A DNA stretch of 64,000 nucleotides from Paramoeba atlantica (Eukaryota; Protista; Discosea), in assembly GCA_977017575.1 (NCBI GenBank), contig CDRNVI010000030.1, positions 682,001-746,000 of the forward strand, given 5' to 3'. Position numbers and translations under genes: made by a program. The notes beneath the pieces were generated by a model. That model searched no databases. It worked only from the letters and a program-made list of their open reading frames with translations, and was not told the DNA's origin. Positions 18,847-21,360 of the stretch are shown piece after piece. The first letter of the stretch is position 1. The number at the start of each line of letters is the position of its first letter.

Positions 18847-19974
18847 CTATCTTTCGGGAAGAGAAAAGTCATTCAAGTTCCGATGTGAGTACGATGCTCC
18901 CCCACCTTCTCCCGATTGCCCCGGAACAGGCATTCCTGACGTAAAAGAAGACTCCAGTGGATACACCGGTGGAAGACCCGAAGCATATACATAACTCGCG
19001 GAAGATGAATTCACAGATCCCGAAGCCGGATGCGAAAAAGACATTGAATTCATCTCCACAAGAGATGCATGCTGTCCATAGGCATAGCTCCCTGACACGT
19101 GAGGCTGTGTCAACGGCCTCCTGTAATTAGAATCCACAAAATGAGATCTTTCACCCTCTATTCTTGTTATTGGTGGAATCCCACCATGAGGCTGTCCATA
19201 TCCCCATGTTGCAGAAGAGATTGCAGACCCTGAATAACAGCCCATCGGCTGTATCGGTCCTACTGGACCTCCGTGAAGAGCTCCATGGGGGATTACAAAC
19301 GATTCAGCATCATGGGGAAGGGCTAACGGTTCCATCCCAGGCTGTACATGACCATATGAAGAAGGATAAGGAGGATGAGAGGCCTGTGAAAATGAGTTTG
19401 CCCTCATTCCGGGAGCATAGGGATAATGAAGAGGATTTCGTAGATGTGCACGTCGCGGAAGCATCGTGCCTACGGCGTAGGGAACACGCTGGGGGTCGTC
19501 GTGACAGGAGAGGTTGTGGTGGTTAGGAAGAAACACGTGACCGGACCACGGGAAGGAGTCTCGGCGGTATTCCTCACGCTCAAACGGATCGGGGAGAGTT
19601 TCTAGTATGGGGGAGGGGGAGGGGGGGAAAGTGCCAGTAGCAGGTGTTGGTTCGGAGGAAGTTGTGGAACCGAAAATACGTTGCCGTGCGTTTTCGTAGG
19701 TTTCCGGGGTGACTTGATGAGGGGGTTGAAGAGGGGGAGAGGGAGGGGGAGCTGTTGAGCTAGTTCCGCGAGAGATGGGGGATGAGTGTTTTCGGGTAGG
19801 AAAAGCTGTTTTTCGTTTGGCAATGCCTCGAACGGTGGGGTAATTGTGCTTTTGGGTAAAGGATTCCTCTTCGGAGGGAGTTTGAGCGGTCACCAGTGAG
19901 ACGTCTGTTGTGGGAATGTTACCGTCGTCATTCTTCTCGGATTTGGACTCCGATACAGGTAAATCATTGTTCAT
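18847..19974 (-). CDS. Pro/Ser-rich hypothetical protein with a SUZ-like motif
   Basis: 375-aa ORF on the cluster strand; YENARQRIFG resembles the SUZ motif Y..AR.RIF. Confidence 0.6.
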   Translation of the reverse strand: MNNDLPVSESKSEKNDDGNIPTTDVSLVTAQTPSEEESFTQKHNYPTVRGIAKRKTAFPTRKHSSPISRGTSSTAPPPSPPLQPPHQVTPETYENARQRIFGSTTSSEPTPATGTFPPSPSPILETLPDPFEREEYRRDSFPWSGHVFLPNHHNLSCHDDPQRVPYAVGTMLPRRAHLRNPLHYPYAPGMRANSFSQASHPPYPSSYGHVQPGMEPLALPHDAESFVIPHGALHGGPVGPIQPMGCYSGSAISSATWGYGQPHGGIPPITRIEGERSHFVDSNYRRPLTQPHVSGSYAYGQHASLVEMNSMSFSHPASGSVNSSSASYVYASGLPPVYPLESSFTSGMPVPGQSGEGGGASYSHRNLNDFSLPER

Positions 19975-20069
19975 TGCAACAATTTAGGTAAGCGCGTAAA
20001 AATATAATGCATAGTAGAGAAAGACAATGTGCCAACACAAGATTTCTACCATGAGAGTTATGCAATTGC

Positions 20070-20544
20070 TAAAGTTTAAAGGACAGCGTTTAAAACAAGA
20101 TGTTGAATCGACAACATGTTCTTGCGTGTAGAACCAGCATTTAAGACGTTCAATAATAAAAAAATCAACTTATTTTCAACACAACAGATGGTCAAAAGGG
20201 ACGTTTTTCCCCCAATGGATGGGGTCATGGTCGAGCGCTTCATGGCGTAGGCCCCAGAGAACATAATTTTTTTTCGTTTTGGCGCCTGATATACCTGTAT
20301 ACGCTTTTGTTTCATTCGATCCTTGCCCAAATCGATCCTTAAGCCCAAAATCTGCCTTTGCGCTTAATTAAATTTGGACGTAATTAAGTTTAGACCGGTA
20401 AAGTTTAAAGGACAGCGTTTAAAACAAGATGTTGAATCGACAATATGTTCTTGCGCATAGAGCCAGTATTTAAGACGTTCAATAATAAAAAAACCAACTT
20501 ATTTTCAACACAACAGATGGTCGAAAGGGACGTTTTTCCCCCAA
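20070..20544. repeat. Two direct copies of a 146-bp sequence separated by 183 bp
   Basis: 20070-20215 and 20399-20544 align without gaps and with few substitutions (taaagtttaaaggacagcg...gggacgtttttcccccaa). Confidence 0.9.
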
Positions 20545-20625
20545 AAAATTTTAACTTCGTACTTTCCTTAATAAAATGTAACAAACAAGAAAATTTATGA
20601 GCTCTACCTTAGTTCCGGTTCTGAG

Positions 20626-21044
20626 GCGGTGCGGGCGTAGTTGGTAGACGGTGGGCCTTACAACCTGCAGGTTGTTGGTTCGATTCCCGTTATCGACAAA
20701 ACTTGCAACCTGGCGGCCTCACAAAGGGAAAGCGATCAGGAGTGCCTTCAAGGCCCACACCCAACCCCGTTCCCTTGGAGGACCGACCCGGAACCGCCGA
20801 GCTGAACCAGGCTCCAGCGCAGCCGCTAAATTGCGAGCTGCTTACGCAAAGGAGGCTTGAGACACAGCCTACACGATGCAACGGGGTGGACGCCCGTCCT
20901 GGTAGCTACGGTTGGGTAGCCGTGCTCGGGCCGCAAGGCGTCGAGTGCCGTCTGGGAAGGGGGTAGCAAGACAATGAAGGTCGGTGACCTGAGACTCTAC
21001 CCTAACGGTTGGCGCTGCAGAGCCCTCCGTGTCTTCTTTTTCTT
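20626..21044 (+). mobile_element. tRNA-derived SINE-like retroposon (419 bp) with 13-bp TSD
   Basis: TSD ttccggttctgag at 20613-20625 and 21045-21057; A-box-like gggcgtagttgg (20633-20644); consensus B box ggttcgattcc (20677-20687) at tRNA spacing; GC-rich structured body; pyrimidine tail with T5 at 21036-21040. Confidence 0.78.
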
Positions 21045-21360
21045 TTTCCGGTTCTGAGCCTGGAAAATAATTTCAAATTCCTTAAACAGCGGATTACAAG
21101 AACTCCCTATTTCACATCGTACAGTACAGGCTTCTATCATCACGTCATCCAAGGTTCCCAGCTACAAAAAGTGATACGGTCATACATTTTACAGCCTGTG
21201 CAAAGAAAAATGATAGAGCGGAGTAGTGTAAGTAGCAAAAATATGATGCTTAATCACTCGCTTGGATAATACTGAAATTTTGTCTGAGAAACCACCGTGA
21301 AAAAATTTAAGTTTTTTTTGGGGGAAAGAAAGTCCCCTTCCACCCAACATACGTATGTAT

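Follow-up and report, generated by a model that had tools for sequence, protein, structure and literature searches.

The insert at positions 20626-21045 of the window (the whole 64,000-nt stretch of DNA that was analysed) is very probably one copy of a young tRNA-related SINE family, that is, of a non-autonomous non-LTR retroposon, which, as we propose, RNA polymerase III (Pol III) transcribes and a LINE copies. It unites the features by which tRNA-derived SINEs are recognized, being short, non-coding and multi-copy, with a tRNA-like head containing A and B boxes, target-site duplications (TSDs) that vary from locus to locus, and a simple-repeat tail. The preliminary description of this DNA had spoken of a "new SINE class", which is overstated, as a tRNA head followed by a body and a microsatellite tail is the standard design of a tRNA-derived SINE; instead, this seems to be a new family within a familiar kind of element, from a lineage in which apparently no such family has been described.

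At the window site, a repeat search revealed an exact 13-bp direct repeat, TTCCGGTTCTGAG, whose two copies (20613-20625 and 21046-21058) show 100% identity. The duplication had been recognized before, with its end placed at 21057, one base short of the true end at 21058. The sequence enclosed by the two copies begins with GCGGTGCGGGCGTAGTTGGTAGA and measures 420 bp, not 419 bp as previously given; the earlier characterization as a GC-rich insert in AT-rich DNA holds, with a GC content of 0.59-0.62 versus 0.31-0.44 in the intergenic flanks. The borders of the insert coincide with the ends of a repeat family that was defined independently by its genome-wide copies, and because both ends match these borders exactly, the duplication is not a product of chance. 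Neither terminal inverted repeats (repeat search) nor an ATG-initiated ORF of at least 40 aa were detected in the insert, its longest ORF with an alternative start being 87 aa. The element lies antisense in the intergenic spacer between two ORFs of a one-strand gene cluster; in the 64,000-nt window, 23 of the 24 ORFs of at least 250 aa share the minus strand, in the manner of a polycistronic cluster. Elsewhere in the window, the interval 40.6-55.2 kb contains no long ORF and several tandem repeats. The A box, the CTTACAA loop and the consensus B box named in the preliminary description are all present, the two boxes at tRNA positions, as is the (T/C) tail with its T5 run, which across the family takes the form of a variable (TTC)n tract. 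The parts of the site are as follows:

20613..20625, + strand: target-site duplication TTCCGGTTCTGAG, 5' copy, directly adjoining the base at which all full-length copies begin.
20626..20697, + strand: tRNA-related head of ~72 nt, recognized by its sequence, by alignment with host tRNAs and by a sub-threshold Rfam tRNA match on near-consensus copies.
20633-20644, + strand: A-box-like GGGCGTAGTTGG, tRNA positions 8-19, one mismatch.
20657-20663, + strand: anticodon-loop-like CTTACAA, recognized by sequence.
20677-20687, + strand: B box GGTTCGATTCC, tRNA positions 52-62, matching GGTTCGANNCC at 11/11 positions.
20698..20990, + strand: non-coding GC-rich body with no ATG ORF of at least 40 aa and two motifs in common with a second family, termed Y (see below).
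20709-20722, + strand: body motif CCTGGCGGCCTCAC, collinear with family Y at near-identical offsets.
20777-20792, + strand: body motif GGAGGACCGACCCGGA, likewise collinear with family Y at near-identical offsets.
20991..21033, + strand: conserved domain at the 3' terminus, beginning with GAGACTCTACCC and finishing in CCGTGTC, directly before the tail and kept in every 5'-truncated copy.
21034..21045, + strand: degenerate (TTC)n tail TTCTTTTTCTTT, a mutated form of the family tract, with the T5 run at 21037-21041.
21046..21058, + strand: 3' copy of the target-site duplication TTCCGGTTCTGAG; it starts with TTC and is thus continuous with the tail repeat.

When the 420-bp insert was compared with its own 45.7-Mb assembly, 212 first-look candidates were obtained, and the 40 of them that were scored, located on many contigs and on both strands, proved 95-99% identical over essentially their full length. 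Searches allowing up to 3 mismatches located two 25-nt motifs, that of the head at 129 genome sites and that of the tail at 102, while the reversed control of either motif gave 0, so that the family comprises roughly 100-130 copies. In metagenomes, the head and tail motifs gave 0 matches. The full-length copies all start at the same base (GCGGTG) and all end in the CCGTGTC domain followed by (TTC)n. The consensus drawn from 31 full-length copies at independent loci measures 422 nt, and because these copies diverge from it by only 1.2-6.7% (the window copy by 1.4%), the family is young and was recently active. The head is conserved among copies as well as the rest of the element. The tail ranges among copies from a few (TTC) units up to ~225 nt; in the 363 kb of sequence examined, almost every (TTC) tract of at least 4 units is the tail of this SINE, and none of the few remaining tracts is preceded by an RT-coding element. 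In two copies (L028 and L007), the tail changes from (TTC)n to (TGTC)n. Arrays carrying the head motif and lacking the tail motif were also observed (G000:C87:19.8-53.2 kb and G000:C12:136-164 kb), and these may represent a subfamily with another 3' end, or interrupted copies.

The head itself is tRNA-related but decayed. Its A box occupies the canonical tRNA position, 7 nt after the common start base, and its B box shows no mismatch and has the canonical spacing. In the consensus, the T-arm (GTGGG/TTCGATT/CCCGC) is preserved in full; in the window copy, it carries two substitutions. Aligned with 24 distinct host tRNAs, the head scored 21, compared with 8.1 +/- 1.7 (maximum 12) for shuffled sequences, which places it ~7.6 sd above them. 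The best matches in this alignment were Gly(CCC) and Thr(CGT), and blastn against the host tRNAs returned tRNA-Thr(CGT) with E=0.003, and also tRNA-Asn. In the near-consensus copies L003 and L007, tRNA was the best of 4227 Rfam families, with 22.3-22.8 bits (below the gathering score of 29) and E=0.0095 in a 140-nt search. ARAGORN draws a cloverleaf from the consensus head only with thresholds lowered to 85%; in the window copy, neither ARAGORN at default settings nor Rfam detected a tRNA, and a permissive Rfam search gave chance-level matches only. A functional tRNA gene was rejected, as ARAGORN found 0 genes in the window and Rfam remained below its gathering score. As to the ancestor, the anticodon-like loop was read as UAC by relaxed ARAGORN as well as by the tRNA model of Rfam, which makes the formerly suggested Val-TAC (Val-UAC) ancestry plausible, if unproven, no Val being among the 24 host tRNAs compared.

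Genes for tRNAs of eukaryote type were observed in many repeated clusters on the contigs C137-C185 (L043-L072), which have a low GC content of 0.32-0.39. They include, for example, Lys-TTT, Ser-AGA/CGA, Ile-AAT and Asp-GTC, as well as dozens of identical tRNA-Lys(CTT) genes, all on one strand per contig. Two of the contigs, C185 and C166, contain copies of the SINE as well, so the whole set can be assigned to the host.

A second SINE family, Y, bears on the role of the head. It is ~390 nt long and more abundant, with at least 488 first-look candidates, and it adjoins some copies of the (TTC)n-tailed SINE. A representative is:

L041:1400-1790 (G000:C2:~532957-533346): family Y copy; further copies in L040, L042 and L036.

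The head of family Y resembles tRNA-Ser(TGA) and has a long variable region, its end is an oligo-T run like a Pol III terminator, and its copies are flanked by their own TSDs of 9-10 bp. Two collinear motifs are common to both families, CCYGGCGGCCTCACT near position 84 and GGAGGACCGNCCCGGA near 140-155, the latter occurring at 354 genome sites (control 0); the common blocks are short, one of 15 nt and one of about 40 nt at 76% identity. In addition, several loci (L031:1501-1845, corresponding to G000:C65:12091-12435, L032-L035 and L037-L039) show the oligo-T end of Y followed directly by the 3' end of the SINE. The fused segment is a diverged version of the last ~55 nt of the (TTC)n SINE plus (TTC)n, and the fusion looks like one template-switch chimera that was later amplified in arrays on C65, C11 and C24.

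The two families together help to judge whether the head matters at all for the spread of the element. Conceivably, the insert is a retroposon but no Pol III SINE, its head being a decayed passenger (acquired, for instance, when a tRNA was captured by template switching) and its copies being made from Pol II polycistronic RNA. This would agree with the failure of the head to pass the tRNA detectors (default ARAGORN, Rfam), with the (TTC)n tail, which in most copies is without a T4 terminator, and with the circumstance that Pol III transcription of the SINE is only inferred. However, a passenger would not be expected to begin at a common start base located 7 nt before a canonical A box, to possess a perfect B box at canonical spacing, or to be conserved among copies as well as the remaining element. 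Moreover, family Y carries a different tRNA-like head at the same position together with a Pol III-like oligo-T end, which a passenger captured twice over would hardly explain. Because two families have different tRNA-type heads, one of them with an end like a Pol III terminator, we argue that the tRNA-like heads act as promoters rather than as passengers, and we consider passenger status unlikely.

Apart from the promoter, the mode of insertion can be read from the copies themselves. Grouping 82 copies by their flanks yielded 46 distinct flank classes, i.e. independent loci, and the flanks of independent copies diverge immediately outside the element ends (20626-21045 in the window). No fewer than 30 loci combine unrelated flanks with target duplications of their own. 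The TSDs are 7-16 bp long and differ in sequence at each independent locus, for example 13 bp in the window, 14-16 in L003, 12 in L026, 11 in L028, 9 in L013 and L020, and 15 in L096, with 10 bp occurring as well. Thus, the earlier reading as a tRNA-headed retroposon was borne out by the genome-wide copy search, which revealed many copies with differing TSDs; in place of a single conserved copy, which would have spoken for a non-coding RNA gene, a dispersed repeat was found. Besides full-length elements, 5'-truncated copies begin at element positions 29, 52, 106, 150, 156, 215, 222, 256, 311, 327, 335, 371 and 381, each with unrelated upstream DNA and with truncation at one end only. Some of them have their own duplication, such as ATTGGATTAGC at L077, and the shortest 3' remnants, of 37-49 nt, still contain the terminal domain. 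All sites of the tail motif that were not already known as full copies turned out, once retrieved, to be copies of this SINE. Copies were also found inserted in other repeats and in a satellite.

The junctions show further peculiarities. Several 5' junctions contain 2-10 extra bases, and a duplicated microhomology is present at the 5' junction of L087, L093 and L104. In L077:750-930 (G000:C14:~143.3 kb), the element bases just upstream of a truncated copy (element 311-419) stand in front of it as their reverse complement, and this junction is a 5' inversion of the twin-priming type. Among the TSDs of at least 9 bp, 12/17 start with T and 4/17 with C, a bias partly inflated by matches that can extend into the T/C tail; several start with TTC and so continue the tail repeat. 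A correlation between the 3' microsatellite and the first TSD base was described for SINEs mobilised by RTE elements (PMC6007223). Taken together, the truncation ladder, the TSDs, the variable tails and the junction features make up the usual signature of target-primed reverse transcription of the LINE type, in which an endonuclease and a reverse transcriptase encoded by a LINE take part, and their combination excludes both a DNA transposon and spread by duplication only.

Duplication has nevertheless shaped the present distribution of the copies. The window interval 19126-21355 is 99% identical over at least 2.2 kb to L002 (G000:C3:113748-115980), including the SINE, its TSD and its mutated tail, and the homology between the two ends ~310 bp downstream of the insert; the window copy was therefore duplicated afterwards onto a second contig, together with 2.2 kb or more of its flank. 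In L018:1501-2887 (G000:C40:962-999 kb), the SINE resides in a 181-bp satellite monomer, and there are over a dozen copies with the same flanks; this array goes back to one insertion, amplified together with at least 3 monomers as a higher-order repeat. Likewise, five loci (L014, L019, L020, L023 and L029, at ~position 1501) harbour the SINE within a family-Y head, where it is inserted in the B-box region and flanked by the duplication TTCAAACCC, and this nested SINE-in-Y pair was multiplied afterwards by tandem duplication. Because tandem or segmental duplications carry many copies (on C40, C61, C71, C65, C87 and C12), the true retroposition events number well below the copy count. A different arrangement was observed on C30, where coding-like flanking DNA forms a long inverted duplication with a 5'-truncated copy (element 222-420) exactly at its centre (L073:5700-6200, i.e. 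G000:C30:605.2-605.7 kb, and L082), the same structure occurring twice on this contig.

The abundance of duplicated copies could suggest that the repeats are functional small-RNA genes or tRNA-like promoter modules, as found upstream of trypanosomatid snRNA and 7SL genes, which were spread by segmental duplication; the use of neighbouring tRNA-type A/B boxes by trypanosomatid Pol III genes would be in line with this. Against it stand the 30 or more loci with unrelated flanks and target duplications of their own, the truncation ladder, the variable microsatellite tails, and the insertions in repeats and satellite. In addition, no Rfam family reaches its gathering score in the whole window, so that a known RNA family, the other finding that would have contradicted a SINE, did not emerge, and the folding of the element is no more stable than its composition predicts (z=-0.63 for the whole element, +0.19 for the 3' 132 nt). 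We therefore regard an origin as RNA genes or promoter modules as very improbable. Least credible of all is a derivative of a DNA transposon (MITE) or a fragment of a larger element, with which the short and non-coding nature of the insert would agree, but not its want of terminal inverted repeats, the TSD length varying from 7 to 16 bp, the truncation at one end combined with a simple-repeat tail, or the divergence of independent flanks immediately outside the element.

A LINE-copied SINE presupposes a LINE, and reverse transcriptases are plentiful in the assembly, with 1851 first-look candidates that fall into more than 15 groups by match pattern. A pattern search of the assembly with up to 3 mismatches found no RT-linked element sharing the terminal 14, 16, 19 or 25 nt of the SINE, diverged or structural likeness being beyond the reach of such a search. 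A diverged variant of the tail used as a pattern gave no RT-linked family either, and the matches of all these searches were only SINE copies and chimeras. Hence, the most stringent mark of a SINE, a 3' end in common with a resident LINE, was not found with the terminal 14-25 nt patterns. The earlier proposal of mobilisation by a LINE is accordingly upheld by the marks of target-primed reverse transcription, but not by a LINE with the same terminal 14-25 nt. Two candidate partners were rejected. On C30 (602-605 kb), the tail motif located 2.6 kb downstream of an intact 1415-aa RT ORF belongs to a 5'-truncated SINE copy in the middle of the inverted duplication, and on C29 (L081), nested family-Y copies intervene between the ORF and the SINE.

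Based on these features, we suggest the following scenario for the (TTC)n-tailed SINE. Starting from the A and B boxes inside the decayed head, Pol III would transcribe source copies, would read through the body, which is without a T4 run, and would stop where a T run occurs within the tail or beyond it. A resident LINE enzyme might then use the conserved 3' domain and the (UUC)n tail of this RNA as its template. The nicked target would probably anneal to the tail repeat for priming, which we deem probable because many TSDs begin with T or TTC.

This layout has close parallels in animals. The salmonid SmaI/HpaI elements and the eel pair UnaSINE1/UnaL2 represent tRNA-derived SINEs with LINE-type microsatellite tails, and in these pairs the 3' end of the SINE is demonstrably copied from the partner LINE. 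With them, the SINE described here shares the A and B boxes in a tRNA-related head, the unique body, the short tandem repeat that comes after a conserved 3' domain, the variable TSDs and the 5' truncations. Unlike in these systems, no LINE with the terminal 14-25 nt was found here, and instead of an animal a kinetoplastid-like protist is the host. In plants, TS and p-SINE1 are tRNA-derived SINEs with pyrimidine-rich tails. Our element resembles plant SINEs with T-rich or (TTG)n tails in having a simple-repeat tail instead of poly(A) and a first TSD base that fits the tail repeat, a likeness in layout, with no relationship in sequence to be expected. The relation of the two families to each other is reminiscent of the CORE-, V- and Deu-SINEs, superfamilies defined by a common central domain, in that different tRNA-like heads and tails are combined with collinear internal motifs; again the likeness concerns the layout, the common blocks being short. 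Au and Au-like elements, which count among the plant SINEs with T-rich or (TTG)n tails, are mobilised by RTE LINEs (PMC6007223), and the published signature of RTE-dependent SINEs, a T stretch ~10 nt upstream of the TSD, was not seen at the window site.

The short retroposons known from kinetoplastids are of another type. RIME, NARTc and SIDER arose from ingi/L1Tc by deletion; they bear the 77-nt Pr77 signature at their 5' end and have a poly(A) tail (PMC12278014). They have in common with our SINE that they are short and non-coding, that their TSDs measure ~12 bp and that they presumably ride on LINE machinery. In contrast, our element starts in a tRNA-like head that contains the A and B boxes, and its tail is (TTC)n, with poly(A) absent in all copies examined; the preliminary description thus rightly set it apart from the RIME/NARTc/SIDER type, its tail being (TTC)n and not poly(A).

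With regard to the host, 4 genome sites (one mismatch; control 0) match the 3' end of a kinetoplastid-type spliced leader including a GT donor, and these matches, together with the one-strand gene clusters, fit a kinetoplastid. For trypanosomatids and Bodo saltans, the retroelements reported are ingi, CRE/SLACS, VIPER and TATE (PMC12278014; PMC4728078), and the transposon Merlin is known from Bodo and Perkinsela (PMC8101967). No description of a tRNA-derived SINE in kinetoplastids was found in the literature searched. Going one step further, one may ask whether the two families belong to a Pol III-type SINE superfamily, the first described for Kinetoplastea, with at least 2 recently active families (with Val-like and Ser-like heads), a common core and pyrimidine tails, (TTC)n or oligo-T, that have no matching resident LINE 3' end and are mobilised in trans by the tail repeat alone or by an RT not yet linked to them. 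We put this forward only tentatively, as an extension that is possible rather than probable.

The kind of element is textbook, and what is gained is cataloguing and not a new principle. If it resides in kinetoplastids, a tRNA-headed SINE would be a fifth type of retroelement there, and, if our interpretation is true, Pol III-driven parasitism of LINE machinery exists in the kinetoplastid lineage. In practice, the SINE copies could serve as presence/absence markers for work on strains and populations. For the host itself, ~100 dispersed A/B-box modules could affect local transcription and RNA processing, because such genomes are transcribed polycistronically and Pol III genes of trypanosomatids are reported to use the tRNA-type boxes of their neighbours.
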